Below are positions 1-64,000 of a stretch of DNA of 64,000 nt, in pieces. The DNA lies in the NCBI GenBank assembly GCA_965112735.1, contig OZ218961.1:1240001-1304000 (forward strand), read 5' to 3'. The notes under the pieces were generated by a model, which ran no database searches, was not told where the DNA came from, and saw only the letters and a list, made by a program, of their open reading frames with translations. The stretch's first letter is position 1; every line of letters begins with the position of its first letter. Origin of the DNA: Phaeosaccion multiseriatum. Taxonomy: Eukaryota > Protista > Ochrophyta, other classes. Position numbers and translations under genes: made by a program.

Positions 1-1506
1 GAAGGAGACAGGGAGACACACAGGGCTGGGATAGAAGGAGACAGGGAGACACACAGGGCTGGGATAGAAGGAGACAGGGAGACACACAGGGCTGGGATAG
101 AAGGAGACAGGGAGACACACAGGGCTGGGATAGAGGGAGACAGGGAGACACACAGGGCTGGGATAGAAGGAGACAGGGAGACACACAGGGCTGGGATAGA
201 AGGAGACAGGGAGACACACAGGGCTGGGATAGAGGGAGACAGGGAGACACACAGGGCTGGGATAGAAGGAGACAGGGAGACACACAGGGCTGGGATAGAA
301 GGAGACAGGGAGACACACAGGGCTGGGATAGAAGGAGACAGGGAGACACACAGGGCTGGGATAGAGGGAGACAGGGAGACACACAGGGCTGGGATAGAGG
401 GAGACAGGGAGACACACAGGGCTGGGATAGAAGGAGACAGGGAGACACACAGGGCTGGGATAGAAGGAGACAGGGAGACACACAGGGCTGGGATAGAAGG
501 AGACAGGGAGACACACAGGGCTGGGATAGAGGGAGACAGGGAGACACACAGGGCTGGGATAGAGGGAGACAGGGAGACACACAGGGCTGGGATAGAAGGA
601 GACAGGGAGACACACAGGGCTGGGATAGAAGGAGACAGGGAGACACACAGGGCTGGGATAGAAGGAGACAGGGAGACACACAGGGCTGGGATAGAAGGAG
701 ACAGGGAGACACACAGGGCTGGGATAGAAGGAGACAGGGAGACACACAGGGCTGGGATAGAAGGAGACAGGGAGACACACAGGGCTGGGATAGAGGGAGA
801 CAGGGAGACACACAGGGCTGGGATAGAGGGAGACAGGGAGACACACAGGGCTGGGATAGAAGGAGACAGGGAGACACACAGGGCTGGGATAGAAGGAGAC
901 AGGGAGACACACAGGGCTGGGATAGAAGGAGACAGGGAGACACACAGGGCTGGGATAGAGGGAGACAGGGAGACACACAGGGCTGGGATAGAGGGAGACA
1001 GGGAGACACACAGGGCTGGGATAGAAGGAGACAGGGAGACACACAGGGCTGGGATAGAAGGAGACAGGGAGACACACAGGGCTGGGATAGAGGGAGACAG
1101 GGAGACACACAGGGCTGGGATAGAAGGAGACAGGGAGACACACAGGGCTGGGATAGAAGGAGACAGGGAGACACACAGGGCTGGGATAGAAGGAGACAGG
1201 GAGACACACAGGGCTGGGATAGAGGGAGACAGGGAGACACACAGGGCTGGGATAGAAGGAGACAGGGAGACACACAGGGCTGGGATAGAAGGAGACAGGG
1301 AGACACACAGGGCTGGGATAGAAGGAGACAGGGAGACACACAGGGCTGGGATAGAAGGAGACAGGGAGACACACAGGGCTGGGATAGAAGGAGACAGGGA
1401 GACACACAGGGCTGGGATAGAGGGAGACAGGGAGACACACAGGGCTGGGATAGAGGGAGACAGGGAGACACACAGGGCTGGGATAGAGGGAGACAGGGAG
1501 ACACAC
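1..1506. repeat. 33-bp minisatellite (GAAGGAGACAGGGAGACACACAGGGCTGGGATA)n, ~45 copies, probably inside a mannosidase intron
   Basis: Near-perfect 33-bp periodicity with one A/G variant (GAAGG/GAGGG). Runs off the window start and precedes the acceptor at 1673-1674. Confidence 0.97.
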
Positions 1507-43102: not shown

Positions 43103-44734
43103 TGGGAGGTGAACAGGCGTCCTTCACGCTCAATTTCTCTAAAAGCTCCGGCAACATCGTCGCACAGTACTATAACTTCATCCGGTAAGTCAGTGACGGA
43201 CTGAATGACTCACTGACTGAGGGAGTGCGTGAGCCAGTAAGCGAGTGAATTACTGAATACCAAAGAGTCGGTCAGTCAGTACGGAGTGTCAGAGGGCAAC
43301 GCTGGATGGCACTGGATGGAAGTGGCGAGTTGCAGTTTCCGAGCCGAGGTCCTGTGACGCACGATGGTCCTCGGACCCCACTCGAAGCTTTCCCCCTTAT
43401 CTTCCCCCCTCTCTACGCGTTTGTTGCGTGTGCTTTTCGTCTCTTGCCCTGCGGCCCTACATACCTGTCCCTCCGTGCTGTATCACCAACTGCTGTGCTG
43501 TGCTATATCTGTGCTGCACTGCGTCGACTTCCATGACAAGCTTGGGCAAGTCCGGGTATTTTCAGGTGCAGTCTACTTGCCGTCTGTGGTGGCGACGGCC
43601 ACTACCCGTACACGACTGCCCAGTACGACTACAGAAACCGACCTGCTTGTGCCAGGGCCAACAGCAATCTGCATGGCATACAGTTTCACGCACCTCACAG
43701 CGCCTCCACTCTCTCTCTTTCTCTTCGCTTAACTGAGCTGCTTTGGTGGCATTTTCAGCTCAAGCGAGTGGAGGTGAAGGCTCCTTCTTGCCTGACTTTC
43801 AGTGGAGGTCGGTCAATCCCTCCAGACCATTCCTGTTCACTTGTGTCGCACCTTCACCGGCCCCTTGTTACTCTCCCTCTGTCTGTCGCTTCTCTCGCTA
43901 CCGGTGGCGGGGCTCTTCTGTTCTTCTTCTCGTGATGTGATCAGCGTAACTGTTTGGTGTGTGGGTGGGTGGGTGTGTGGGTGGGTGAGTGAGATAGTGA
44001 GTGAGTGAGTGAGATAGTGAGTGACTGGGTGAGTGAGTGAGATAGTGAGTGAGTTGGTGAGTGGGTGAGTGGGTGAGTGAGATAGTGAGTGAGATAGTGA
44101 GTGAGATAGTGAGTGAGTGGGTGAGTGAGTGAGTGAGTAAGTGAGTGAGTGTGAGTGGGTGACTGGGTGACTGGGTGACTGGGTGAGTGGGTGAGTGGGT
44201 GAGTGAGTGAGTGAGTGAGTGAGTGAGTGAGTGAGTGAGTGAGTGCATGCGTGAGTGATTGAGCGAGTGATTGAGCGAGTGATGAGCGATTGAGTGTGTG
44301 AGTGAGTGAGCAGCTCCAATCATGCCTTTGCCCCTCCTCTTTGTTGCCCACCGCCCCTCCACTTGCTTCTCACCCACGACGTTTCCCTCCCTTCACGCTC
44401 CTCTCCCCTTGCCCGCCGCTGCGACGCGCCGCACTCAGGAGAATGCCGAGTTCTTGCGCTCGTCGCTCGTCAAGACGGTGAGCACACAAACACTCACTTC
44501 AAAGGATGGCATTGGATGGCTTGACTTGCAACAGAAGTACTGGGTGAGAAACACCCCTCCCTCCCTCTTACCCCTCAGGGCATGGTGACCATCGTGGACA
44601 AGGCGCACATCCCCGTGGTGGCGTGGAGTCTCACCGCTGGCGCCAACTGCAGCGTATTCGACCTCCAGGACAAGCTTCGCAACAAGGGCTGGATAGTTCC
44701 GGCCTACACGTGCCCACAGGGCGCCACTGACATG
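43103..44734 (+). pseudogene. Glutamate decarboxylase fragment, copy 2, truncated at ~44900
   Basis: Same exons as copy 1 with a 4-bp deletion at the start of the first exon; the last two exons are missing. Confidence 0.78.
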
Positions 44735-46403
44735 GTGTGTGTTTGTGCGAGGGTGTGTGGGTGCGTGACTGAGTGAGTGCGTGGGTGCGTGGGTGCGTGG
44801 GTGCGTGGGTGCGTGGGTGCGTGCGTGAGTGGGTGAGTGCGTGTGCGTGTGTGCGTGCGTGGGTGCGTGAGTGCGTGAGTGCGTGAGTGCGTGGGTGCGT
44901 AGCAGAGAGGTTGCTTCTACAAGTTGATCTTCGAGTGAAAAAAATTCCAACGCTTTCTAGAGGTGTTGGTGATTTGGACGTTTCGGTCTGTGATTGTGGC
45001 TCCGGTCAGACCTGGCTCGCTCAGAGGCTCTAGAGCTAGCTACAGGGGGCGAGGCAAAAATATAGTGTCTTAGCTGCCGGGTGAGGAATTGGCTGGGTGT
45101 CGCCCTCCTCCCTTATCCCAATTCTCCCTCTTGTCCTGCGAGTACGCCCAATGGAGCGACCCCCCCCCCCCCCCCCACCTTGTGAGCATGCCCCCCTGCC
45201 TGTGTCGAAGCAACTCTGACGTGCTACCGAGCGTTTCTCGATAGCATGCTACTGGCTGGCTGGGCGCGCTGTGCGTCGCTCCGGACCCGGCCGGTAGCTA
45301 GCTAGCGCGCTACTGGCTGGTGGTCGGCGCCGCCGGCAGCAGCCAGCCAGGCAGCATGCCAGCTGACACCGCGGTAGCAGGTAGTAGCAGCTGCCGGTCG
45401 GTCGGAGGGAGGGAAGGAGGGAGGGGAGCTGTTGTGTACGGACATCATGCAGTCATATAGGCTGGAGGAATGGAGAGTTGTAGTCTGTGGCGCTCTCTTA
45501 CTCTAGCATCTTTGCCCTAGCTAGCTAAAGGAGACTCGGCTCTTTGCTGCTGGAGCTGAGGCAAGGCCTCCAAACTTTACAACCTTGGCTTGCACCTGTC
45601 TCTTAGCTTATTGGCTCACTTTCCGACTTGCTAGTCGGCCCCATGCACGTCTAAACCGCTCGGCCTTCGGCCGATCTTGGCTTACGCCGGCGGCCTCCTC
45701 CGTCCGCTCTAGGCCGCTCACTTTTCAGTCCTAGGCGGCCTATATAGCTAGCCCGCCTCTAGGCAGCCTCCCAGTGACCGTGGGTGCGTGCATGGTGCCG
45801 CCCAGCCAGTGGGTAGCAGCATGCCTGTAGGTCTGCACTCCTCGTAGGGCCAGCGAGGCGGAAGAGACAACACGAACGAAGTCTACTCCTCACCTCCAAT
45901 CCCAGCTTGGTCTCTGCACTCGCTCAGCGAGACCTCTCAACCTCAGCATTTCAGCTCTTGAGTCGAAGGGGTCGACAGCCGGACCACCTTTGATCGACAG
46001 CTTTGCGGAATTCAGCATCCGCATGGCGAAGGCCAAGGAAGCTGAGGATCAGCAGGACGCTGCAGACTCAGAGGATGTCGCGGGGGCAGCAGCCAGCCAG
46101 ATACAGCATCCGAGGCGGACAACGAGGAGGAAGCAGCTCCCGCCGACGAGGAGCGAGGAGATTGGCAGCAGCAGTTCGGACAGCGAAGAGGAGTCTCCGC
46201 GTATGCCCGCTGTTGTTTTGGTGCCCTCTCGGTTGCCATCCTCTCTCTTAGCTACTGCTCCCAACTTCCCATCCGGGGAGGTTACCGAGAAGGCTCTTAT
46301 TGCTTACTATTTTAGCAGTATGAGCGACACCTCTACTTCCGGTGATACACTGCCATGGGGGGAAGCACTTTCCGACTTGCTAGCAATGGCAGGGTTGGCT
46401 ACA

Positions 46404-47082
46404 GAGGGAGGGAGGGAGGGAGGGAGAGAGGGAGGGAGGAAGGGAGGGAGGGAGGGAGTGGGAGCGAAAGTGGAGGGAGGGAGGGAAAGTGGAGGGATGG
46501 AGGGAGGGAGGGAGGGAGGGAGGGAGGGAGGGAGGGAGGGAGGGAGGGAGGGAGGGAGGGAGGGAGGGAGGGAGGGAGGGAGGGAGGGAGGGAGGGAGGG
46601 AGGGAGGGAGGGAGGGAGGGAGGGAGGGAGGGAGGGAGGGAGGGAGGGAGGGAGGGAGGGAGGGAGGGAGGGAGGGAGGGAGGGAGGGAGGGAGGGAGGG
46701 AGGGAGGGAGGGAGGGAGGGAGGGAGGGAGGGAGGGAGGGAGGGAGGGAGGGAGGGAGGGAGGGAGGGAGGGAGGGAGGGAGGGAGGGAGGGAGGGAGGG
46801 AGGGAGGGAGGGAGGGAGGGAGGGAGGGAGGGAGGGAGGAAGGGAGGGAGGAAGGAAGGAAGGAAGGAAGGAAGGAAGGAAGGAAGGAAGGAAGGAAGGA
46901 AGGAAGGACGGAAGGAAGGAAGGAAGGAAGGAAGGAAGGAAGGAAGGAAGGAAGGAAGGAAGGAAGGAAGGAAGGAAGGAAGGAAGGAAGGAAGGAAGGA
47001 AGGAAGGAAGGAAGGAAGGAAGGAAGGAAGGAAGGAAGGAAGGAAGGAAGGAAGGAAGGAAGGAAGGAAGGAAGGAAGGAAG
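46404..47082. repeat. (GGGA)n-(GGAA)n polypurine microsatellite
   Basis: Read directly from the sequence. Confidence 0.97.
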
Positions 47083-47088
47083 GGGAAG

Positions 47089-47593
47089 TCGGCCCCAGAC
47101 TGGCCTAGAAGCCTATGCTCTAGGCCCTAGGCCGGCCATTTTTTCTCCCTAGGCCGGTGGTTCTAGGCCTAGGCCTCGATAGGCCTCGGCCGGGGGGGGC
47201 TGCGCCAAAAATAGGCCTAGGCCGGGGGCCTGCGGCCCCCCTAGGCCGTCCGAATTTCGTCTCTATCGGCCCTGGAAGAGGTTATCAGATTACTGATTAC
47301 GGCCGGCGCAGCCGGCCTGATTACTGATTACTGCCGGCGCCAGCCGGCCTGATTACTGATTATGGCGCCAGCCGGGCCTGATTACTGATTATGGCCGGCG
47401 CCAGCCGGGTCTGATTACTGATTATGACCGGCGCCAGCCGGCCTGATTACTGATTATGACGGGCGCTAGCCGGCCTGATTACTGATTATTGGCGCCAGCC
47501 GGCCTGATTACTGATTATGGTCGGCGAATACTGTAACCTCTTCCAGGGCCGATCTCTAGGCCTAGGCTTCTAGCTAGGCCAGTCTGGGGTCGA
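47089..47593. mobile_element. Non-autonomous TIR element (MITE) inserted in (GGAA)n
   Basis: TCGGCCCCAGACTGGCCTAG (47089-47108) versus CTAGGCCAGTCTGGGGTCGA (47574-47593): 19/20 inverted match. Interior rich in CTAGGCC. Confidence 0.75.
47265..47553. mobile_element. Nested MITE with 20-bp TIRs, CTCT flanking duplication and an internal tandem array
   Basis: ATCGGCCCTGGAAGAGGTTA and TAACCTCTTCCAGGGCCGAT form a perfect IR. CTCT at 47261-47264 and 47554-47557; eight GATTACTGATTA units inside. Confidence 0.8.
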
Positions 47594-47785
47594 AGGAAGG
47601 AAGGAAGGAAGGATGGAAGAAAGGAAGGAAGGAAGAAAGGAAGGAAGTAAAAGGATGGATGGGATGAAGGATGGATGGAAGGATGGCTTTATGAAGGCCT
47701 TTTTTCGTCATCACATGGAGTCGTCCATGTCTAGTTGGAGGAGAAGAAATTTTTTTTAGAAGACGTTTTTTTCAGCCTGTCGTTG

Positions 47786-47878
47786 TCCTCTTTAGCTCAG
47801 TTTGGTTAGAGCGTACGACTGTTAAAAGACACCCTGTAAGGTATCGTGAGGCCCTTGGTTCGACCCCAAGAAGAGGAG
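47786..47878 (+). tRNA. tRNA-Asn(GTT) with an 18-nt intron at the canonical position (47825-47842)
   Basis: Acceptor stem TCCTCTT/AAGAGGA plus G; A-box TAGCTCAGTTTGGTTAGAGC; anticodon arm TACGA-CTGTTA^A-TCGTG; T-arm CTTGG-TTCGACC-CCAAG; oligo-T at 47901. Confidence 0.92.
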
Positions 47879-49540
47879 GGCGATTCGCCGCCACAAAAGC
47901 TTTTTTTCCCTCTTTCATCCACTTTTTTTTTTTTTTTTTTTTTTTTGTTGTTGTGAGGTTCTGGCTAGTGGAGAAGTCAGAAGTGAAATGAAGAACAGCA
48001 GCACACAAGGATACCCAACAGATAGAGGGTTCGAGTGTGATATCAAAAACTGAGCATACTGTGGAGTCTCAAAGGTGGTGCACATGTTGGAATCCGGATT
48101 ATCGTCGACATTTGGGGGACGCTCCTTTTGTATGCGCGATCAGTCGCAGGTGGAAGTTGGAGATAAAGGAGAGTTTGTAAAGACAGACCAATACACCATT
48201 TCCCTCCCTCCCTTCTCTCCCTCCTGGCGACTCCTCTTCTCCACATAGGGTGGCACAATCTCATCGCCCCCCCTTCCTTTCCAATCCCCACTCTACTACT
48301 TGACTCGCTCGCACGCTACCTTCGTACGATATACCAGTCGACCAACTCCGGTTCCACCGCCAGACTCCATGCGCAACGCCGCTATGAAGGAAGCAAATCT
48401 GGATGTTTTTTTCTTTTTTTCTTTTTTCCGGAATCACAGACCCGAAACGTCCAAATCACCAACACCTGTAGCGAAAATGCCTTTTGCCCACAGAAAGAGA
48501 AATAGCCTAAAATCCAAAAGCTACATCTCTGGGTACGCCGTGCCAAGACCACTGGACTTGCGCTGTACCAGCCCGACATTACCTCCGAAACAAAACCCCT
48601 CAACCCCGCTGCCCAGAAAAGCGAACGAGAAAGAAGAAGGGGAGAGAGAAAAAGAACGGAACGCTTCGCTCGTGCTGTGGACGGGGCGTCTTCTCGGGGT
48701 GGAAGGTGGAAGAGGAGGAGAGGGCGACTCAGCTGGAGATACAAGTGCTGAGGAGCAAAAAGCCAAGAGAATCGACGCGGAGAGGGAAGGGCGTCGTAAA
48801 GCGAGGGAGGAATAACAGAGGCTGGGTAACTGAAAGGCCGCCGTTCTGGCCGCCCGAAACGAAAATGATGTGACGCAGGTACCGGAGCTGATGGAGCGAG
48901 ATGCGAGCCTTGCAGGGTGGGGGGGCGGCGTAGTGGATAGAGAGTGGGGGGGACCCTTGTCTTCTGACCTCTTCCTCCTCCTTTAACACCAACAGGCTGG
49001 AGCATGATTGGCGCACCTCTCCCCAGCTGGGCCTCCACATTCTTTGTGGCCGAGGTTGGGGAGGAGCTTCCCCGTGCAGCGGCCCCAGGGGTTTGTGGAC
49101 GCAGACCCCGACATGTCCAAGCTACGGGTAAGAATAGGTGCCTCTACTTGTAACGCTTAGCGAACCAACGTGTCCTCGGGGGTCCCTCCCGGCGTGGTGA
49201 ATGAGTACCCACTCTCTCTTGCTCTGTGTGTGTGGTTGAGTATATATAGATGTGTGTCCGTTTGTTGCTCTGCATGCGTGTATTTGCTTGGGTCGCCACG
49301 TGTTCTTTGCGTTGGAAGAGAAAGCAAATCTCGCTACTGTTCGCTGCCATCTGTGTGTTTCCTTTGTGTTTGTAAAGGTGTGCATGCTCACCCCCACCGC
49401 GGGCGAGAAAGTGTGGGGTGCTGCTCCAGGCCTTGTTCGATGTGTGTAACCAACGCCTATGGCGCAACGACCTGACCATGAAAGACCTGCTCGAAGTGTT
49501 GGTGCTGGATGCGACGAGGAGGCCCCAGGTGTTAAAGCTG

Positions 49541-52500
49541 GTGAGTGAGTGAGTGAGGGAGGGAGTGCGTGCGTGGGTGGGTGGGTGGGTGAGTGAGTGA
49601 GGGACTGAGGGAGTGCGTGCGTGTGTGGGTGGGTGCGTGAGTGAGTGAGTGAGTGAGTGAGTGAGTACGTTAGTGAGTGAGTGAGTGAGTGAGTGAGTGA
49701 GTGAGTGAGTGAGTGAGTGAGTGAGTGAGTGAGTGAGTGAGTGAGTGAGTGAGTGAGTGAGGGAGGGAGTGCGTGCGTGGGTGGGTGGGTGGGTGGGTGG
49801 GTGAGTGAGTGAGTGAGTGACTGAGGGAGTGCGTGCGTGCGTGGGTGGGTGCGTGAGTGAGTGAGTGAGTGAGTAAGTACGTGAGTGAGTGAGTGAGTGA
49901 GTGAGTGAGTGAGTGAGTGAGTGATTGAGGTAGTGAGTGAGTGAGTGAGTGAGTGAGGGACTGAGTGAGTGAGTAAGGAGTCAGTGCGTGAGTGAGGGAC
50001 TGTGGGACTAACTGACAGACTGAGTGAGCAAGAGCTTGACCTGTAAGTGACCCCCCTTTCACGACTCCACCCCAGCCTATCCCACCTTAAACCACCCAAG
50101 AGGACGACGCCATGAAAAAAAAAGGTCTTCTGAAAGAAATTAGCGCATCGTTCGCTCTCTCCCTCCCTCCCTCCCTCCCTCCCTCCCTCCCTCCCTCCCT
50201 CCCTCCCTCCCTCCCTCCCTCCCTCCCTTCCTTCCTTCCTCCCTTCCGTCCTTCCTTCCCCTCCACAAAGCACTTCCTTCCTCCTTCTTACCCTGCAGTC
50301 CGCCACGACCCAGCTAAGCAGCGCACTCTTGCCGATGAGCACCCTGCCTGCTTCCTTCCCTCCGTCCCTCCCTCCCTCCCTCCCTCCCTGCCCCCCACCC
50401 TCCCTCCTCCCCCCCACTCCCTCCCTCCCTCCCTCCCTCCCTCCCTCCCTCCCTCCCTCCTTCCTTCCTTCCCTCCCTCCCTCCCTCCCTCCCTCCCTCC
50501 CTCCCCCCCTCCCTCCCTCCCTCCCTCCCTCCCTCCCTCTCTCCCTTCCTCCCTCCCTCCACTCTCCTTCCCACTCCCTTCATCCTTCCTTCCCTCCTTC
50601 CTTCCCTCCCTCCCTCCCTCCCTCCCTCCGCTCTCTTTCCCACTCCCTCCCTCCCTCCCTCCCTCCCTCCCTCCCTCCCTCCCTCCCTCCCTCCCTCCAC
50701 TCTCCTTCCCACTCCCTCCCTTCACTTTCCCTCCCACTCCCTCACTCACTCACTCACTCACGCACTCACTCACGCACTCACTCACTCACGCACTCACTCA
50801 CTCACTTACTTACTCACGCACTCACTACCTCACTCAATCACTCCCTCACTTACTCATTCACTGACTCACTCAATCACTCCCTCACTTACTCACACACCCA
50901 CTCCCTCCTCCCCTCCCTCCCTCCCTCCCTCTCCTTCCCACTCCCTCCCTCCACTTTCCCTCCCACTCCCTCACTCACTCACTCACTCACGCACTCACTC
51001 ACGCACTCACTCACTCACGCACTCACTCACTCACGCACTCACTCACTCACTTACTTACTCACGCACTCACTACCTCACTCCTTCACTCCCTCACTTACTC
51101 ATTCACTGACTCACTCAATCACTCCCTCACTTACTCACACACCCACTCCCGTACTCACTCACTCACTCACTCACCCCCTCACGCACTCCCTCACTTACTC
51201 ACTCACTCACTCACTCACTCACTCACTCAGCACTCACTCACTTACTCACTCACTCACTTACTCACTCACTCACGCACTCCCTTACTCACGCACTCACTAC
51301 CTCACTCCTTCACTCACTCACTCACTCACTCACTGACTCACGCACTCACTCACTCACTCACTCACTCACTCACTCACTCCCTCACTCACTCACTCACTCA
51401 CTACCTCACGCACTCACTCACTCACTCACCCACCCACTCACTCACTCACTCACTTACTTACTCACGCACTCACTACCTCACTCACTCACTCTCACTTACT
51501 CACTCACCCACCAACTCACTCACTCTCACTCACTCACTCATTCACTCACTCACTCACTCACTCACTCACTCACTCACTCACTCACTCATTCACTCACTCA
51601 CTCACTCACTCACTCACTCACTCACTCACTCACTCACTCACTCATTCACTCACTCACTCACTCACTCACTCACTCACTCACTCACTCAATCACTCTTAAT
51701 CACTCACTCACTCACTCACTCACTCATTCACTCACTCACTCACTCACTCACTCACTCACTCCCTCACTCACTCAATCACTCTTAATCACTCACTCACTCA
51801 CTCACTCACTCACTCACTCATTCACTCACTCACTCACTCACTCACTCACTCACTCCCTCACTCCCTCACTCCCTCACCCACTCACTCACTCACTCACTGA
51901 ATCACCCACTCACTCACTCACTCACTCACTCACTCACTTACTCACTCACTCACTCACTCACTCACTCACTCACTCACTCACTCACACCCTCACTCACTCA
52001 CTCACTCACTCACTCACTCACTCACTCACTCACTCACTACCTCACTCACTCACTCACTCACTACCTCACTCACTCACTCACTCACTACCTCACTCACTCA
52101 CTCACTCACTACCTCACTCACTCACTCACTCACTCTCTCACGCACTCATTCACTCACGCACTCACTCACTGACTCACTCACTTGTTGGAAGGCCCCGGGA
52201 TAGGCATTGGGGATGTTGGAAGGCCTCAGATGAGATGGGCTATAAGTCAATGGCTCAGGCCCAGGCAGACGCGGTGAGAACGGGTGGCGTGGCTCTCACT
52301 ATCCTATGTGCGAAGGTGGTCGTTTAGGACTAGCATGCAATAAGTTAATAGAGGCAAGGCTGGCTGCTAGGCTGGCTTTGGGGTTGCTGTTACCTTGTCC
52401 GTGTGTCTAGTTCTATCCTATCTGTAGGCGACAGCGCATGTCGGTCGTGCGTACGTCGTTTTACAACCCCAAAGGCCCGAAAGCAGCACTTAGCCAAGAG

Positions 52501-54110
52501 GCTTAGGCAGGGAAGGAAGAGGCGTGTTAGGGGAGCACCGTGCGGCACATAAGCAGTGCCGTACGACGTGCGACAGCAGCGGAGTTGTTGTTGCACGGAG
52601 AGGCGGGAGTGGAGATAGAATTGCCGGGAGTGGTGTCTACAGCGGGCACAGCTTTCGAGTGTGACAGCAGCACGGATGTTGTTGTTGCACGGAAATGGAT
52701 GCTGAAGGTTGGTGGGCAGTGGGGAGAGAGAATTGCCGGGAGTGGTGTCTACAGCGGGCACAGCTTTCACTCACTCACTCACTGACTCACTCACTGACTC
52801 ACTCACTGACTCACTCACGCACTCACTCACGCACTCACTCACTCACTCACTCACTGACTCACTCACGCACTCACGCACTCACTGACTCACTCACTCACTC
52901 ACTCACTCACTCACTCACTCACTAACTCACTCACCCACTCCCTCCCTCCCTCACTCACTCACTCACTCACTCACTACCTCCCTCCCTCCCTCCCTCCCTC
53001 CTTCTTCCCACTCTCTCCCTCCCTCCCTCCCTCCTCCCCTCCCTCCCTCCCTCCCTCCCTCCCTCCCTCCCTCCCTCCCTCCCTCCCTCCCTCCCTCCCT
53101 CCCTCCCTCCCTCCCTCCCTCCCTCCCTCCTTCGTTCCCTTCCGCCCTCCCTCCCCCCCTCCCTCCCTCCCTCCCTCCCTCCCTCTCTCCCTTCCTCCCT
53201 CCCTCCACTCTCCTTCCCACTCCCTCACTCACGCACTCACTCACTCACTCACTCACTCAATCACTCACTCACTCACTCAATCAATCACTCACTCACTCAC
53301 TCACTCACTCACTCACTCACTCATTCACTCACTCACTCACGCACTCACTCACGCACTCACTCACTCACGCACTCACTCACTCACGCACTCACTCACTCAC
53401 GCACTCACTACCTCACTCCCTCACTCATTCATTCACTGACTCACGCACTCCCCCACTCACTCACTCACTCACTCACTCCCTCACTCACACACTCCCTTAC
53501 TCACTCATTCACTGACTCACGCACTCACTCACCCATCCACTCACTCACTCACTCACTCCCGCACTCACTCCCTCCCTCACGCACTCACTCACTCACTCAC
53601 TCACTTCCTCACTCCCTCACGTACTCAGTCCCTCACTCACGCACTCACTCGATCTCCCAGTCACTCACTCAATCCCTCAACCCCCCCCCGCCTCCCCCCC
53701 CTCACTCACTCACTCACGCATTCATTCACTCACTCACGGGTGAGAGTGAGGGTGATGGTGGGGATGAGCCAGGACAGATGAGCGCGTCTCTTCTTGAGTG
53801 AGATGCGGATAGTGTCGTTGGCATTCATTTAGATGGTCGGTCTGACAAAACTACAGCTTTCCTCCTCCTCCTACTACTACTACTACTACTGCTGCACTCA
53901 CTCACGCACTCCCTCACTCCCTCACTCACTCAATCACTCACTGACTCACTTTATCTCTCACTCACTCACTCACTCACTCAGTCACCCTCTCACTCAATCG
54001 CCGACTCACTCACTCACTCACTCACCCTCTCACTCCCTCACTACCTCACTCACTGACTCAATCACTGACTCCCTCACTCATTCCCTCCCTCACTCACGCA
54101 CGCACACACG
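49541..54110. repeat. ~4.5-kb field of (GAGT)n/(ACTC)n and (CCCT)n microsatellites
   Basis: Read directly; (GAGT)n at 49.5-50.0 kb is inverted relative to (ACTC)n at 50.7-54.1 kb. Confidence 0.95.
52183..52769. mobile_element. Probable solo LTR (587 bp) inserted in (ACTC)n
   Basis: Sharp unique island from TGTTGGAAG to GCTTTCA (TG...CA) with CTCACT on both sides. Internal ~40-bp direct repeat at 52617-52656 and 52729-52768; no coding capacity. Confidence 0.55.
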
Positions 54111-54330: not shown

Positions 54331-57300
54331 TCAATCATCCAAAGCCTCGCCCCTTCCGTACCCATACTCTGCCCTCGGGTCGTCCATCTTCTTGCGGGAG
54401 AGCCTGAGCTGGACGCCGTCCGTGGCGATGTTGATGGCCTTGGTGAGGTTGACTACGTCCTCGATGGTCGTCCACTTCAGCCTGTAGCAGGGGTCCAGGG
54501 CCCGCCCGTCCTTGGCCTTACGAAGCTTCTTGGGGACATAAATGCACTCCTCTGTAGTCGTCCTGTTCAGGAGCTTGCCCGTGAGCTTGGGCACCGCCCA
54601 CAGGAGAAGCCGGCGCCAGAAGTCGAGCTCAGGCCGATCGGTGGAGAAGAGCGCGTGAACGGCCCGCCGTCGACCAATCTGCCTCCTCCCGCGCTTGCCC
54701 TTGCCCTTGCCCTTGCCCTTGCCCTTGCCCTTGCCCTTCTTGCCCTTCTTGCCCTTGCGCTTCTTGAGACTGCCGATGTGACCGTCTCCTGTGGTTCACG
54801 AGGAGGAGCAAGGTTGTCAGCGAGTTTGTTATCGACAGGAGGAGCCAAGCGCTTGGTGTCTTTCCCTGGTTGTGTTGTTCTACTACCACATACCGCCGAT
54901 CATGCCGGAGTAGAAAGTAACGGCGGATTTGGCAAAGTCCGTCTGCGCTGCCTCCTCATCCTCGAGAGTTGGGGCGTCGGACATGGTGTAGATGAAGAGC
55001 ATCCTCCGGACGGGACTGAACCGGTCGGAGACCTTGCTGGAACTGTTGCCAGCGAGGATGCCGAGGATGGCCCACAGCTGCACAGTGGGTGGGTGGAGAG
55101 GGAGAGCGGCATGAGGGGGGGGGGGGGGGGCGAGGGCAGCGGCGAGCGGGCCAGCCATGTACTCACGTGGGGGTGGCGTAGGCGGACGACGTACATGAAG
55201 AGCGTTTTGCCGTGTATGCTGGTGCCGCTGTAGCGCTTGTGAATTTTGCCGCCCTTCTTGCCTCCGACGATACGGAGTACGTTTCGCATGACGCGCATGA
55301 CCCCACGCTCGCTCTTTCCCGCCTTCAATACCAGGTCAGCCTGGTCGGGTCTGATGCAGCCGTCTGAACCGAGGAAGCCCATGAGGGAGAGGAGCTCGCG
55401 GCGGAGTTCCCTTGTGCTGCCCAAGCGAAGGGGCGATGGGCGGCGAGGGTCCGTTGCTGGGAACACCTTGCCTACTCTGGCCTCGAGCACCATCGACAGC
55501 AGAAACGAGCTGCTCACAGAAGTGGCCCGCTTGTAGATTCTGGACAGGTGACGCTTGAAGTTCTGGAGTTTGGGAAGGAAGACGGGTAGGGTCCAGCTCG
55601 TTAGCTGCTGTACAGCGGGAGGGACATGGTACACACACACACACAAACAGCCACAGCTACACACACTCCAACACATACACACGCAACGCACACGCTCGAG
55701 TACTCACGTCGTGAAGAATCTGCACAAAGATGTGATACTTCTTGTAAGAGTCCGTCTCGCGTCCCCTTCCCCCAGGCTGGGGGTCATGGTCAGGCTCGTC
55801 ACCCCAATCCTCCTCCTCGTCACCCCCGGCTAGACAAATCTCCTCGAAGCGACTCTCCACTCTGCGGCAGAGCCACTCTATGTCCTGGAGCTCGTCGTTG
55901 GTGATGACGTCCAGGCGGTAGGCCTCTGTGGCGGCCTCGCGCACATCCTGCAGACTCCTGTAGGGCTTTCGGCCCAGACCTTGGAGCCGGGCACCCAGCG
56001 CGTCCGGAAAGCTCGCCGGATACTTTAGCAGGAGCGACTCCACTCGGATGGGCACACCGACACCTACACCACGCGACTTAAGGAAACCACCAGGCTTCCT
56101 CTTTTCGCCATAGCCCCCCCCGACTGAGAACTCATTGAACAGCGAAATGCCGCGAAACGCCTCCGGCTTCAGAACCTGTGCCGCATCCCAGAAGGGAAGA
56201 TTCTGCAGGAGAGTTTCCGTAGTCCTCGTGTCCTGCCGCTGAGCAGCGTACACCAGAAGCGCATGGAAGGTGGCGCGGTCATCCACCGTCTTGCCCCTGC
56301 CGCGAAGTTGCTGGTCCACGAACAAGGCTGAGGTCTCAAACACGGTTCGGATGGCCTTGAGCCTGTCGTCGCCAGGAACACCATCGATCATGTTTTCTGG
56401 GTCACGCATAATCTGCAGGGGAGACGCGAGCGAGGCAGAGTAGTGGGTGGCGGTTGAGAGGGTCGCAAGCAAGGGAAAGCAGTGCTACAGCTCGAGGGGG
56501 CAGGAGTCACAGAAGAGAGGGAGCCGCCGCACGCCGCTCACCCCGCGCATCCCAACGTACCTCAGCCAGGGTTTGGTCGAAGAAAACAGCTTGGAACGCC
56601 AACTGTTTGCTCGTGAGCCATGGGAAGTATAAAGTAAAGTGCAGCTGGTGCCAGAGGAAGCCCATCGTACTTTTCTGTGGATCCACCCCGTTGGCCCGCA
56701 CGTCACCCTGGAGAACTTTGCACCAGGCCTGACAAGCGGCTTGGCTCTTCTCCTTGCTCTCTTCCCGCTCCTCCGGTGAGCTGGTGGGCTCATTGAATCC
56801 GTCAATCAGCTCCTCCGGTTCCTCCATGTAGTCAATGTCGGTCTTGGCAGCAACCTGCGCCTCGAGCTCCTCCAGAATGGCCATTTCCGCCTTGAGCTCC
56901 TCCTCCTCCTCCTTCTCCTTCTCCTCCTCCTTCTCCTCCTCCTCCTCCTCCTCCTCCTCCTCCTCCTCCTCCATTTCGACATTGCTGCGGGGGGGCGGGC
57001 GCTCTGCCTCATCGGGCGCGAATAGGTTGATCAGCCCCGGCATCCAGCCAGGGAGGCATGCCCGCCCCGGGCACATGACCAGGTGCGGCGTTTCCTTGTT
57101 GGCCTCCCCATCCCGGGGCAGTTGATACAAGTGCCCTCGCAAGCAAGCTTGGGCTGCTCGCTTCGCGTTCAGAGCGTTGGTGTCAGGGTTCTCCTCATCG
57201 GGTTTGTAGGCGGCCCGGAGAACCTCGTTACACAGTTGATCAGGGCAGGTGACGTTGACGACCTTGAGCCCTTCGAGCATTGGGCCCTGGGCATCCTCCC

Positions 57301-58925
57301 CCGTCAACTCGACAGCCACCTTGCTCCACTCCTTGTCCGAGAAGACGCTGGAAGAGAAGGGGGCCCATGGACACTCCTCCGTCGCGATGAAGTTCATGCC
57401 CTTGTTACGAATCTGAATGGAGGGAAAGGGAAAGCGTGAGTTACTTCGTGTGCGTGTGTCTCTGGAGCCCACTGGGCCGGGGCCGGATCAAGGTCAGTTG
57501 TTGTGATTGGGTCCCTCTCAGAAGCGGGGCAGTTCAGCTGTCTCACACATACCAGACTCAACCCACCTCCTTTCTTGCGTCGAGGACGTAATTCTGTGTG
57601 TTCTTGGGCTTCAACTCATCGCTCAACCCTTGCATAAACGCTTCCAGCGTTGCGTAGCCCGTTCTATCTGTATACAGCCCCCCCCCCCCCCTCCTCCTCC
57701 TCCTCCTCCTCCTCCTCCTCCTCCCCCTCCCTCTCGCTTTCGTCACTCTCCTCCTCGCTGCCGCTTTCGTCATCCCTCTGGCCTTCACTCTCATCCTCCC
57801 AATCGCCTTGATCACTCTCATCCTCGCTGCCGCTTTCGTCATCGGAGTGGTCCTGCTCCAGGTGCGTGTGAAAGAAAAAAGAGCAAAGGGGCATGAGTTT
57901 ACGGACACGGGAAAAAAAAAGGCATCACTCACTCCACTCCACTCCTTCCTTCATTCGCTCCCGCCCTCACCTGGCCCGCCCCTGCTGGCTGCTGCTGCTG
58001 CTGCTGCTGCTGCCGCTGCTGGCCGCTGCTGCTGGTGGTGGTGGGACTGCTGCTGCTGCTGCTGCTGAGGGGAGTCTCCGTGGCGCGGCCCGTCCCCTTG
58101 TTTGAGCTATATGTAGTGCTCTTGCTGCCGCTGCCGGACGCTCCACATTCGCTCTCGCCTTCACCGTCGCTGAGAGATAAATCGACGAGATTGGAGGTCT
58201 CCTGCTCCAGGTGCTGCGTGTGAAAGAAAAGAAGGGCAACGGGGCATGAGTTCGTAATGACGGACGGTACGGACACGGACAAAAAAAGGAATCACTCACC
58301 TGGCCCGTCCCTGTAGTTGCTGCTGCTGGCCGCTGCTGGCCGCTGCTGGCACCGCTGCTGCTGGTGGTGGTGGGACTGCTGCTGCTGCTGCTGCTGAGGG
58401 GAGTCTCCGTGGCGCGGCCCTTCCCCTTCTTTGAGCTATATGTAGTGCTCTTGCTGCCGCCGCCGGACGCTCCACATTCGCTCTCGCCTTCACCGTCGCT
58501 GAGAGATAAATCGACGAGATTGGAGGTCTCCTGCTCCAGGTGCTGCGTGTGAAAGAAAAGAAGGGCAACGGGGCATGAGTTCGTAATGACGGAGCGACGG
58601 TACGGACACGGACAAAAAAGGAATCACTCACCTGGCCCGTCCCTGTAGTTGCTGCTGCTGGCCGCTGCTGGCCGCTGCTGGCACCGCTGCTGCTGGCACG
58701 GCTGCTGCTGGCACCGCTGCTGCTGGCACCGCCGCTGCTGCTCTTGTTGTCGCTTGCTGTCCAGTGGTCCGTCAACGTCTTCTTAGCCTTCTTGCCCGTC
58801 CCTTCTTGTCCCCCATTGTTGTTCTGACGCCGATATCGCTTCTTCCGGAGATGGTCCGGAACGGTGTGGTCCGAAATGGCGTGGGTACCGGTAGCTCCTC
58901 CAGAGGGGGAGCAATCCATGTCCAT
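54331..58925 (-). CDS. Spliced ~1230-aa protein with a C-terminal two-motif LAGLIDADG endonuclease-like domain
   Basis: Exons 58925-58632, 58542-58300, 58213-57971, ~57852-57567, 57412-56561, 56412-55708, 55607-55167, 55077-54894, 54788-54331 are GT-AG and in phase, apart from one indel in a C-run at ~57678-57691. Motif 1 LMGFLGSDG; motif 2 YSGMIG^GDG split by an intron. The 5' end is uncertain. Confidence 0.75.
57971..58631 (-). repeat. ~330-bp tandem duplication of one intron plus one exon within the LAGLIDADG gene
   Basis: Exons 58542-58300 and 58213-57971 (both 243 nt, HLEQETSNLVDLSLSDGEG...) and their upstream introns are near-identical. Confidence 0.92.
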
Positions 58926-60375: not shown

Positions 60376-62316
60376 ATGGAACAGGCCAACATCAAGACGC
60401 CGCCGGCAAAGAGGAGCGAGATGCAGCATCGGTGGGCTTCGCTGGTGAAGGGGTCCAAGTATTACTCTCCCAAGGGTGTATCAGAGTCCGCAGCGAAGAA
60501 GAGGAAGCTCCGAGACGGCGATTGGGGGGAGGAGGGTCCAGCTGAGGATACGGCCGGCATGCTCTTCACAGAGGCCGCAAAGAAAAGCAGAGAAGCTACG
60601 GAGGCGAGGGAGAGGCAAGAGGCAGCAAGCAAGAAAGCAGAGGGTCTTGCGGAGAAGCGCACAGCCCTAGAAACGGCGAGGCCGAGATGCAGCCTCAGAA
60701 GCGGAGCAGGGGGTGACGCAGCAGCACAGCAGCAGGAGCAAAGCCTTTCTTCTGCGACCAGGTGGAGTACTACGAGGGCGACGACGGGCTTGCTGCGCTT
60801 CACTACGGGCTGTGCACCTACAAGGCGGCTTGTGTGAAGGGAGCCTGTGACGACTGCAAGCCCGGCGTGAAGGGTATCCCCCATTGTGAGTAGAGCGACG
60901 GAAACTACACGCACACGGTGCAGGTGATAGAGTGGGCGCCAGTGGTGACAAAAGAAGGGAAGAAGCACGACCGGCAGAACGTGGTTGTGGAGATGACTGT
61001 GGCCGAGCAGTTCCTCCGGCAGAGGTACATCCAGCATCATGTCGCGACGAAGGTGCAGAGGCTTGCTGCCGAGGTGACTCTGAAGCGACTCAAGCCCCAT
61101 CAGATCATAATGGGGATGGACTTTTCGGAGAAGCATAAGCTCCGCGGTACGTCAGAGCAAGAGGGGCGCCCACTTCTCTCCCCTCCCGTCCTCCTCCCTC
61201 CTTTTCCTTCCTAATGTATTCGTGTGTTTCTCTCCTGCTCTCCCTTTCATCAGGCGCGTTCTCTGTGACCTGCGGCACATGTCCGTCCGCGACGCTCATG
61301 ATTTGCTACGTGCACTGCCGCCCCAGGATGTGGGGGGGGGAGAAGCCCGTCCATGACGTGCACGCTCAGGTTTTCACCTCCGACGACTCCCTTCAAGACC
61401 AAGCCTTCCATGAGCACTGCTGCAGCCTCATGCATCAGGAGTACAAGGGATACTTCGAAAAGCACGGCCTCAAGCTGAAGGAGTGGATCAACGTCACTGA
61501 GAACTTCGCCTTCGTTGCCTCCTGTCTCAAGTTGTGGGGGGTGAAGATGACGCACATGTTCCACACCACCTCGCATGGTAAGGGGCCCCACGATGGGCTT
61601 GGGGGTACCATCAAGGCCATGGCATCGAGGAGGACGGACATGGGGGAGAGGGTGATGAACTCGGCGAAGGACTTTGCCGCCTTCGTGACTGAGATGTTTG
61701 ACACCACCGCCCAGCCAATGTCGGACGAAGACTACTTTGGAAAGGGCTGGACACCTTTCACAGCCCGCATGGCCCGTGTGAGGTTTATTGCCGCCGGCAG
61801 CATTCAGCGGGAGGACGTGAACATCAAGGGCATCCAGGGCACCCAGAGTATATACCACTACGAGGGCGATGTGGAGAAGGGTGGCTTCGTTTCGGAGGCC
61901 ACGATTGGAGCGTTCCATCAAGGCCAGGACTATGACGTTGCGTACCCACTTCATGTTCGCACGATGAGGGCAAGTACGAGGACTGCTTCGCCGCGAAGAA
62001 TGGGCAAGGCGACCTGTTTGGGGGGGAGCCAAAGCTTGTGTACCTGTACCAGTCTATAGTGGGAGACAAGGGCCCGCTTCTCACTCGGGCCAGTGTAGTC
62101 GCGATGAACCGGCCTACGTTGGAGTCTTGCTGCGCACGGGAAGGGATTAAGTACTCGAAAGGGACCCTGTTGGCGCGCCTTGCGTCCCGCGAAGCACCCG
62201 CGGAGCAGCCTGTGACGCCCGTTGTAGAGCCTTCGGCACCCCCAACACCTCCCACCACCCCTGCTGTCCTCTCTAGCCCGCCCCCGGCCGCTCCAGACAC
62301 TGCTGTCATGATATAA
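60376..62316 (+). mobile_element. Degenerate DNA transposase, Sola (Sola2-like) type
   Basis: In order: CVKGACDDC, YIQHHVATKVQ, MGMDFSEK, VFTSDDSLQD, FHTTSHGKGPHDGLGGTIK, then a SAP-like tail (LESCCAREGIKYSKGTLLARL). Several frameshifts; the middle catalytic motif is missing. Superfamily assigned from recalled motifs only. Confidence 0.7.
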
Positions 62317-63034: not shown

Positions 63035-64000
63035 TCAGTCCTGGCAGTCGCAGGGGTGCCCATTGGCGTGCACCCATTGCTTGATGTCCTCAAATGTTGC
63101 GGCCTCGATATGCCATTCTTCCCCATCAAACCATTCTCCGTACACTCTGTCCCTGATGACCTGCGGGCACGATCTTTCGTCCCACTCACACTGCACTTTC
63201 TCCGATCTGAGCCATTTCAGCACAGCAAGGCTCTTACCCTGCACGACTGCACAACTACAGACCCACCAATCCCAATCACAGAGGCGGCGAGCCTTGGCGT
63301 GGAGGAACTTCAGTGCCTCGAGATGGCCAAAGGAAGCGGCAGAGGAAGCTCCCTTCCGCCAATTATGCTCGTCGTGGTCTTCCAACCAGGCTCTGGTGGG
63401 AGGATGCTCGAGAAGCCATTCCAGGACGGGGATTTGCCCACCCATACAAGCGCCGTCCCGAGATACTGAAGATTCAAGATCAAAGTCTGCATTCGTACGG
63501 AGTTGTGTGTTGGCATCCTCCGATAGCAGCCACTTGAGCATCTCCAAACGCCCATTACTTGCAGCCAACTCATAGACCAGAAGGGCCCACGGGCACTGCT
63601 TCTTGCGGGGAAGGTCCTCCGAGCGCAGCCACTTCAGGACTTGCAGGCCATGCTTTTCGTTCTCCGGTGCTGCGAAACACACAGATACACACCAGGGACA
63701 CCTTTTGGCATAAAGGGCCTTGCATACCTCGACATCTCCGTGCCGGGCAGCGGCCTCGAAGACCTTCACATAAAGCTCGAGCCCCTGCCGATTTGTCGCC
63801 CAGTTCGTGCACTCCACAGAGCTGACCACAGATGAGAAAGCTGTCTCCATTACTGGATACAAAGCAGTGTAGCTGGCCTTCCACGTCTTACTCGCACTTG
63901 CGACGAAGCAGAAGTGCCCCTCTCCCACGTGCCCCAAGACAGAACGGAGCAGCTCGGGCTGTGCCAAGACCTCGTGGCAAGCTTCAAAGAGCAGCCCATT
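63035..64000 (-). CDS. Divergent ankyrin-repeat protein (algal/giant-virus type); start lies beyond the window end
   Basis: Frame open to 64000: LLRSVLGHVGEGHFCFVASASKTW, AAARHGDVEVCKAL, AASNGRLEMLKWL, AASFGHLEALKFL, recurring CPW/CDW/CEW. Confidence 0.85.
   Translation of the reverse strand, partial: NGLLFEACHEVLAQPELLRSVLGHVGEGHFCFVASASKTWKASYTALYPVMETAFSSVVSSVECTNWATNRQGLELYVKVFEAAARHGDVEVCKALYAKRCPWCVSVCFAAPENEKHGLQVLKWLRSEDLPRKKQCPWALLVYELAASNGRLEMLKWLLSEDANTQLRTNADFDLESSVSRDGACMGGQIPVLEWLLEHPPTRAWLEDHDEHNWRKGASSAASFGHLEALKFLHAKARRLCDWDWWVCSCAVVQGKSLAVLKWLRSEKVQCEWDERSCPQVIRDRVYGEWFDGEEWHIEAATFEDIKQWVHANGHPCDCQD

Follow-up and report, generated by a model that had tools for sequence, protein, structure and literature searches.

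Gene structure

The window (the whole stretch of 64,000 nucleotides that was analysed) carries on its minus strand a real nuclear-type gene, from a GC-rich eukaryote, with spliceosomal introns; its structure, as predicted in silico, comprises 9 exons and 8 GT-AG introns, each 86-154 nt long and consistent in phase, and encodes 1236 aa. An earlier note on this DNA had proposed a spliced nuclear gene for a protein of ~1230 aa, and the full model is close to it in length. Coding is supported in every exon by strong codon periodicity (GC3 0.77-0.85, against GC2 0.38-0.48). The three 3' exons (55607-55167, 55077-54894 and 54788-54331, minus strand; A, B and C in what follows) and the two GT-AG introns between them give a C-terminal portion of 360 aa. 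The model has the following components:

58632-58925, minus strand: exon 1, 98 aa from ATG 58925 (start codon inferred)
57971-58542, minus strand: exons 2 and 3 with their intron, 81 aa each, a 329-bp tandem exon-intron duplication
57567-57855, minus strand: exon 4, acidic, rich in Ser, Asp and Glu; its frame breaks within a run of 14 G (G14)
56561-57412, minus strand: exon 5, 284 aa, with a Cys/His-containing region, a poly-Glu stretch and a region of no known family
55708-56412, minus strand: exon 6, 235 aa, a domain without known family
55608-55707, minus strand: intron between exons 6 and 7, 100 nt, phase 0, GTGAGT...GTACAG
55167-55607, minus strand: exon 7 (A), 147 aa, linker and first LAGLIDADG half-domain, GC3 0.77
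55078-55166, minus strand: intron between exons 7 and 8, 89 nt, phase 0, GTGAGT...GTGCAG
54894-55077, minus strand: exon 8 (B), 61 codons and 1 nt, end of half-domain 1, linker and motif 2 helix, GC3 0.82
54789-54893, minus strand: intron between exons 8 and 9, 105 nt, phase 1, GTATGT...CCACAG
54331-54788, minus strand: exon 9 (C), 152 codons and stop, remainder of the second half-domain, then a short tail

The last intron (54893-54789) splits the Gly codon directly preceding the Asp of the second motif described below. A tandem in-frame acceptor lies 3 nt downstream of it (CAGGAG), the use of which would drop one Gly. The four sequencing runs that contain the locus are DNA-like, with contigs that span the introns and contain no joints; RNA-Seq runs were sought for splice-junction transcripts and none were listed, and an exact search of metagenome contigs for the predicted spliced junction as a possible transcript gave no match. 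The locus adjoins about 10 kb of microsatellite arrays. Direct or inverted repeats and target duplications flanking the gene were sought within the window, and nothing emerged beyond microsatellites and the 329-bp duplication inside the gene.

The N-terminal region

About 880 aa without known family precede the LAGLIDADG-like domain. Exon 1 contains the basic clusters RKKRYRR and GKKAKK together with Ser-rich low complexity, and the duplication of exons 2 and 3 (repeat families D7/D8, 99% identical) was also seen in a self-BLAST. Two identical copies of LVDLSLSDGEGESE are located at 58518-58477 and 58189-58148 (minus strand), at aa 107 and 188. Both match, as a pattern, the known consensus of SUMO-interaction motifs (SIMs), (V/I/L)(V/I/L)x(V/I/L) with an acidic/Ser-rich stretch, and may be read as such. 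Pfam gave no significant family for exon 5 and none for exon 6, and word-indexed searches with exon A, exon 6 and the N-terminal part of exon 5 found no homologue.

The C-terminal domain

The C-terminal portion contains two motifs and an insert:

55353-55394, minus strand: motif 1, LLSLMGFLGSDGCI, the LMGFLGSDG region, in exon A; aligns with the first motif in each of the two phage profiles (see below)
54775-54921, minus strand: motif 2, VTFYSGMIGGDGHI, the YSGMIGGDG region, interrupted by an intron; aligned to motif 2 of profile s3b, within the same single domain as motif 1
54667-54774, minus strand: basic Lys/Gly/Arg insert of 36 aa, GSLKKRKGKKGKK(GK)n...RGRRQIGRR, after motif 2

Motif 1 is found in exon A where the earlier note had placed it, and motif 2 is indeed completed only by removal of the phase-1 intron 54893-54789: exon B ends in ...VTFYSGMIG plus one base, which joined to exon C yields VTFYSGMIGGDGHI, while the unspliced frame of exon B meets TAG TAG. 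The helix of the second motif and its Asp are on different exons, so that the domain is whole only in the spliced product. The two motifs had been described as about 120 aa apart; there are two, with starts separated by a somewhat longer distance of 128 aa. Each has the features of a LAGLIDADG motif, namely a helix, small packing residues and an acidic residue followed by Gly, and both line up with the motif columns of two phage profiles. The putative metal-binding Asp, which had been said to be kept in both and is so in the translation, is encoded by GAC at 55364-55362 in motif 1 and at 54786-54784 in motif 2 (minus strand).

The basic insert occupies the position expected for the loop of the beta1'-beta2' hairpin of the second half-domain, and is possibly a nuclear-localisation or non-specific DNA-contact loop. 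It is followed by LFSTDRPELDFWRRLL and CYRLKWTTIEDVVNLTKAI, all three being present after motif 2 as previously listed. The domain ends in exon C with LRLSRKK, matching the L.RK end of the phage profile, and the protein terminates 25 aa further on in ...GEALDD. The 'intein-type' flavour suggested for these elements was not borne out, and an intein origin was set aside: no exon has a Hint, intein or zinc-finger family in Pfam, the zinc finger being a feature of the yeast HO and WHO proteins, and there is no C-terminal His-Asn.

Similarity to LAGLIDADG profiles

We compared the spliced protein, in local scripts, with two independent home-made profiles of phage LAGLIDADG proteins, the Pfam membership of which was checked by sampling or alignment. 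Taken as absolute values the resulting scores are low (7-15 bits), and in part they restate preselected motifs; since the locus was chosen for its motifs, motif-driven scores are biased. The first profile was made from 60 phage proteins chosen by GFFDGDG (10 out of 10 sampled were Pfam LAGLIDADG_3). It matched the spliced C-terminus with 7.5 bits (P 1.3e-4), a value reached by 0 of 5000 shuffles, and the matches to its two halves were co-linear there. When all 209 ORFs of the window were ranked with this profile, exon A came first and exon C second. Deletion of the basic loop raised the score to 9.3 bits (P 3.7e-5; 0 of 20,000 shuffles reach it) and the second half was then recovered as one domain (profile positions 162-244).

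The independent profile was built from 32 phage proteins chosen by LAGLIDGDG; in a 27-member alignment of this set (A1), LAGLIDADG_3 was present in 23 and LAGLIDADG_1 in 22. Its match to the spliced protein was a single domain across both motifs, with 14.6 bits (P 8.7e-7), reached by 0 of 20,000 shuffles (maximum 10.0 bits). The score also depended on the splicing pattern, being highest for the proposed junction, against 13.2 bits with the alternative AG, 8.0 bits without exon C and 5.5 bits with exon B skipped. With both motif segments fixed and the remainder shuffled, the real score was reached in 16 to 151 of 5000 shuffles, and for the motif-free C-terminal tail alone in 5 and 7 of 5000 (two of four profiles); together, motif-preserving shuffles and motif-free pieces correspond to P of about 0.001-0.03. 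With hhalign, one run gave P 0.0013 and a local run E 1.6e-6 with a probability of 90%.

Standard searches were blank. Pfam on the separate exons retrieved no LAGLIDADG_1/2/3, Hom_end or WhiA even at E 10, and PHROGs, also at E 10, had no match to them either. The same was true of phmmer with exon A against the PDB and against 1.84 billion representatives, and of tblastn against phage records. Related loci were sought in viral and metagenome contigs and none were found; scanning the genome contigs for LLGLIIGDG returned mostly chance matches. The family is, at the level of sequence, an orphan. As Pfam is blank on the exons, the reading put forward in the earlier note stands by a narrow margin, through the targeted profiles.

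Language-model neighbours and predicted structure

Among the 100 nearest clusters of exon A in the ESM-Atlas, 80 carried LAGLIDADG_3, while exon C alone, whole or minus the basic loop, had no LAGLIDADG neighbours and no family. AlphaFold models of the single exons A and C were poor (pLDDT 42 and 46), and Foldseek with the low-confidence model of exon A returned noise only. DSSP applied to these low-confidence models assigned H65-81, E91-95, H100-118, E121-129 and E135-142 in exon A and H52-64, E80-83, E100-103 and H108-121 in exon C. The order of elements in them, helix-strand(s)-helix-strand-strand in half 1 and helix-strand-strand-helix in half 2, fits a LAGLIDADG domain. Targeted profiles, language-model neighbours and secondary-structure order thus make a two-motif LAGLIDADG domain, as first proposed from the motifs, the best reading of the C-terminus, and the gene is probably a new nuclear variant of the LAGLIDADG kind.

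Proposed function and alternative explanations

The explanation that we favour, and consider likely, is that of a spliced nuclear gene of ~1236 aa whose last ~290 residues make up a single-chain LAGLIDADG domain with two motifs, very divergent in sequence, the gene being one copy within a fast-changing, lineage-specific family of probable DNA cutters. By analogy with known enzymes, whose metal-dependent, site-specific double-strand cleavage leaves 4-nt 3' overhangs, the two motif helices would pack together and two four-stranded sheets would form the saddle on the DNA, with the Asp ending each helix binding metal ions for the cutting of both strands. The Lys/Gly-rich loop would sit in the second DNA-contact hairpin, and the two N-terminal SIM-like motifs and several basic clusters would point to nuclear action on chromatin. 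The family would consist of sequence-specific DNA-binding proteins, probably DNA-cutting, of selfish or formerly selfish origin, and the present copy may already be decaying. What the analysis shows is the in silico gene structure, the codon periodicity and a statistical similarity to LAGLIDADG profiles; from there on, fold, catalysis, nuclear targeting and selfish behaviour are inferred.

The blank outcome of every curated and large-scale search, the unusable single-exon structure models and the choice of the locus by its motifs (in a scan of this size a few coincidences of P 1e-6 are expected) could also mean that an unrelated lineage-specific C-terminal domain happens to contain two G-x-x-x-G-D-G strings. 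We regard such a chance resemblance as very unlikely, given that motif-preserving shuffles and motif-free pieces remain above chance (P 0.001-0.03), that the alignment to two independent profiles is co-linear with the correct motif spacing, that LAGLIDADG_3 dominates the neighbours of exon A (80/100 clusters) and that the secondary-structure order fits. It is more improbable still, to an extreme degree, that the gene encodes a LAGLIDADG maturase or endonuclease that works in mitochondria or plastids after import. Plants do have nuclear genes for organelle-targeted LAGLIDADG proteins, but the N-terminus here is not presequence-like, with its NLS-like basic clusters, long acidic/Ser tracts and SIM-like motifs, and the Pfam LAGLIDADG_1 or LAGLIDADG_2 match that organellar forms give was not obtained with the separate exons.

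A different question is the state of this copy. In the reference, the frame of exon 4 is broken at the G14 run (57691-57678), and the AG acceptor usual for the repeat units has been lost from the third of them, before exon 4. The DNA contigs contain further, near-identical copies of gene parts, and between close copies the amino acid is altered in 28 of 32 changed codons, an excess that is compatible with decay and with diversifying selection alike. These observations, the neighbouring ~10 kb of microsatellite arrays and the lack of any listed RNA run would all suit a recently inactivated family member, a pseudogene without present function. Against this, the nine exons have strong GC3 periodicity and, except at the G14 run, keep an open frame; 6-9 nt downstream of where the acceptor was lost there is another in-frame AG. 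In one contig of run X4 the frame is restored by 2 additional G at 57677 (the contigs of the other runs stop at the G run), so that an error of assembly or in the homopolymer may explain the break, and we consider a dead copy somewhat unlikely. A domesticated, non-catalytic scaffold, in which a real LAGLIDADG fold only binds DNA or protein partners, as in WhiA and maturases, with a host role such as chromatin or SUMO-pathway regulation, seems to us unlikely. It would account for a domain placed within a large host-like multi-domain architecture with SIM-like motifs and acidic tracts, for the window having no flanking repeats or target duplications, and for the long Lys/Gly loop, which disrupts the hairpin that carries the catalytic Lys in active enzymes (PMC3384342). 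However, both motif Asp are kept, whereas known domesticated forms such as WhiA lost theirs (PMC3384342), the family appears to be multi-copy, and its close copies differ mainly in amino acids, unlike a conserved host regulator.

Comparison with known LAGLIDADG proteins

With the free-standing two-motif enzymes of phages and archaea (LAGLIDADG_3 / LAGLIDADG_1) the gene shares a pair of motifs, each with Asp-Gly at its end and separated by about 100-130 aa, both acidic residues, and a weak co-linear profile match through both half-domains to the C-terminal L.RK. The usual structural reference for these enzymes is I-DmoI. Unlike them, the present gene gives no hit at the thresholds of curated profiles (Pfam on the exons), has its domain in three exons of a nuclear-type gene, behind ~880 aa of SIM-bearing sequence and with a 36-aa Lys/Gly loop in the second hairpin, and is not in an intron, intein or phage. 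The organellar LAGLIDADG proteins encoded in plant nuclei have likewise two motifs and an intron-containing nuclear gene; they are recognised by Pfam and have presequences for targeting to the organelle, whereas the protein described here is a sequence orphan with nuclear-type features.

Yeast HO and WHO also lie on nuclear chromosomes and encode a LAGLIDADG endonuclease domain, and the WHO genes belong to multi-copy families that diverge fast and include many pseudogenes (PMC7282813), a divergence that resembles the variation among copies seen here. Both are intein-derived, with a Hint domain around the nuclease and a C-terminal zinc finger (PMC7282813), neither of which was found in the present gene (Pfam on the exons; C-terminal sequence). 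WHO elements adjoin FBA1 with duplicated target fragments (PMC7282813), while within the window no target fragment or flanking repeat lies beside our gene. The latter has eight spliceosomal introns. In WhiA/DUF199 a LAGLIDADG fold has similarly been taken into a larger host protein, but WhiA is bacterial, has neither acidic residue and possesses a C-terminal HTH (PMC3384342); in the present protein both Asp are retained, and Pfam on its exons gave no HTH family.

Significance of a probable nuclear LAGLIDADG gene

LAGLIDADG nucleases are the classic rare-cutting homing enzymes, and a nuclear gene for one is unusual because they normally live in organelles, phages and inteins. Plant organellar factors are one further nuclear example. 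As for nuclear chromosomal examples outside organelles, rDNA introns and inteins, a limited search found yeast HO/WHO (PMC7282813). If the favoured reading is true, a multi-copy, intron-rich nuclear family with both Asp and SIM-like motifs would widen the known habitats of LAGLIDADG proteins, would be a new source of natural rare-cutters and would offer a test case for the taming or chromatin targeting of selfish nucleases. A broader scheme, decidedly unlikely at present, is that of a so far undescribed class of selfish or defence-like elements in the nucleus of a protist, in which a lineage-specific SUMO-targeting module (here the SIMs) would bring interchangeable homing-type nucleases (here LAGLIDADG) to chromatin, the DNA-contact residues diversifying fast among copies. 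The locus also illustrates that such domains can evade every standard annotation route: introns interrupt this one, in one case within the catalytic motif itself, and its sequence has diverged too far for curated profiles to recognise.

Two motifs brought together by predicted splicing

The eukaryotic, GC-rich window (about 58%) carries, on its minus strand, a nine-exon gene model whose last three exons, here called A, B and C (exons 7 to 9), encode a C-terminal region of 360 aa. The earlier note had read this region as a two-motif LAGLIDADG endonuclease domain that is made whole only by removal of an intron. The features concerned are the following:

55607-55167, minus strand: exon A, which encodes LLSLMGFLGSDGCI (translation)
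55166-55078, minus strand: intron between exons A and B, 89 nt, phase 0, GT-AG
55077-54894, minus strand: exon B, ending in VTFYSGMIG plus one base
54893-54789, minus strand: intron between exons B and C, 105 nt, phase 1, GTATGT...CACAG
54788-54331, minus strand: exon C, whose junction with exon B yields VTFYSGMIGGDGHI

Both motifs, including the second one completed by splicing, are present as claimed in the minus-strand sequence and in its spliced translation, and the Asp of each is retained (codons 55364-55362 and 54786-54784). At the level of the sequence, the observation of a splice-completed two-motif region is thus confirmed. If intron 54893-54789 is not removed, the reading frame runs straight into TAG TAG. 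An alternative in-frame AG is located 3 nt downstream of the exon C acceptor, and its use would cost one Gly. In every exon of the gene GC3 is 0.77-0.85 versus a GC2 of 0.38-0.48, and we therefore consider these frames to be coding.

Profile comparisons of the spliced domain

Standard searches gave no match to a known family. A Pfam comparison gave no family for any exon taken separately, PHROGs profiles searched in the same way were also negative, and so were a PDB sequence search, a word-indexed search, phage tblastn and searches of viral and metagenome loci. An exhaustive phmmer search with exon A against 1.84 billion representatives returned no matches, not even exon A itself. AlphaFold models of single exons were poor (pLDDT 42 and 46) and Foldseek with one of them retrieved only noise; helices and strands in these weak models nevertheless follow one another as in the LAGLIDADG family.

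Targeted profiles were built locally. For the first set, viral contigs were scanned for DNA encoding GFFDGDG, giving 119 loci, and all ten of the sampled ORFs belonged to Pfam LAGLIDADG_3. The profile of 60 two-motif proteins from this set scored 7.5 bits on the spliced C terminus (P 1.3e-4 for one target), a value reached by none of 5000 shuffles. The alignment was co-linear, with motif 1 and the strands following it corresponding to the first half of the profile and residues 293-342, ending in LRLSRKK, to the end of its second half. When the 209 ORFs of the window were ranked with this profile, exon A came first and exon C second. With the 36-aa Lys/Gly loop that follows motif 2 removed, the second half aligned as one domain (9.3 bits, P 3.7e-5, 0/20,000 shuffles).

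LAGLIDGDG served to collect a second, independent set; in a 27-member alignment of these phage proteins, LAGLIDADG_3 was detected in 23 and LAGLIDADG_1 in 22. A profile built on 32 of the set's two-motif proteins aligned to residues 75-226 as a single domain across both motifs (14.6 bits, P 8.7e-7), a score not attained in 20,000 shuffles, whose maximum was 10.0. Among the junction variants the proposed one was the best at 14.6 bits. Use of the alternative AG lowered the score to 13.2, omission of exon C to 8.0 and skipping of exon B to 5.5, and exon A by itself reached 6.8. By hhalign, exon A gave a P of 0.0013 and the spliced domain an E of 1.6e-6 (probability 90%).

Since the locus had been chosen for its motifs, we also checked the remainder of the domain. 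With both 16-aa motif segments held and the rest shuffled, the real score was reached by 16 to 151 of 5000 shuffles, depending on the profile. The motif-free tail of 115 aa was matched by 5/5000 and 7/5000 shuffles with two of the four profiles, and the result was weaker with the other two. Among the ESM-Atlas clusters nearest to exon A, 80 of 100 carried LAGLIDADG_3 at a cosine of only 0.81, a lead that names the predicted family; exon C alone gave no LAGLIDADG signal there. Taking all lines together, we consider it likely that the spliced C terminus has this fold, an assignment that is probable on targeted statistics rather than on curated profiles or structure.

Possible function and relation to known systems

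In active enzymes it is the motif Asp residues that bind the catalytic metals; the domesticated WhiA has lost these acidic residues (PMC3384342), whereas both are kept in the P. multiseriatum gene. The 36-aa Lys/Gly/Arg insert is positioned at the expected beta1'-beta2' loop, which in I-DmoI bears a conserved Lys (PMC3384342); it may act as a nuclear-localisation signal or as a non-specific DNA clamp, or it may be a disruption. In the literature searched, the closest nuclear parallels are HO/WHO and those host proteins that have a homing-endonuclease fold. The gene shows neither a Hint or intein signal nor a zinc finger and so does not follow the HO/WHO architecture (PMC7282813). Within the window, the gene is flanked by neither repeats nor target fragments.

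The whole gene and its variant copies

From its ATG at 58925 the predicted gene runs through nine exons and eight GT-AG introns (86-154 nt) and codes for 1236 aa. Exons 2 and 3, together with their intron, form a 329-bp tandem duplication of an exon-plus-intron unit with 99% identity (95-99% across the repeat region 57966-58696), and each of the two exons contains LVDLSLSDGEGESE, which fits the SUMO-interaction consensus as a pattern match only. A full-text literature search found no paper joining LAGLIDADG with SUMO-interaction motifs or ubiquitin-specific proteases. The third unit of the repeat is degraded: the AG acceptor of the two preceding units is missing before exon 4, and in-frame AGs occur shortly downstream. 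Within the acidic exon 4, a stretch of 14 G (57691-57678) throws the reference out of frame; a contig from sequencing run X4 has 16 G, two more bases, which restores the frame, and the contigs of the other runs end at this point. Neither a Pfam family nor a homologue was detected for the roughly 520 aa of exons 5 and 6.

The four runs holding the locus derive from one sample and are DNA-like, their contigs spanning the introns with no joints. Parts of the gene appear at two- to five-fold read depth, with variant contigs in which 28 of the 32 changed codons alter the amino acid, a pattern that fits either relaxed constraint or diversifying selection in a sample too small to choose between the two. 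Three of the variants are whole-codon swaps with identical flanks (54352-54354, 54992-54993 and 55194-55196; AGG to CAT, ATC to TGC and ATG to TGC). Diversifying selection could explain these swaps, as could conversion from distant paralogues or artefacts of the assembly.

Surroundings of the gene

Directly downstream of the gene, about 10 kb (44000-53800) consist of dense microsatellite arrays with periods of 8 and 12 bp, of the CTCACTCA and GGGAGGGA types, which occur in both orientations and form long imperfect inverted repeats. A satellite with a 33-bp period, its copies about 98-99% identical, occupies the start of the window (1-1506). On the plus strand, ORFs with an HGKGPHDGLGG motif (60376-62059) are divergent from the gene; they had no match in Pfam or PDB and may encode a mobile-element protein. 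Finally, a minus-strand ORF of 310 aa (63035-63967) has ankyrin repeats that match Pfam Ank families with a best E of 8e-10.
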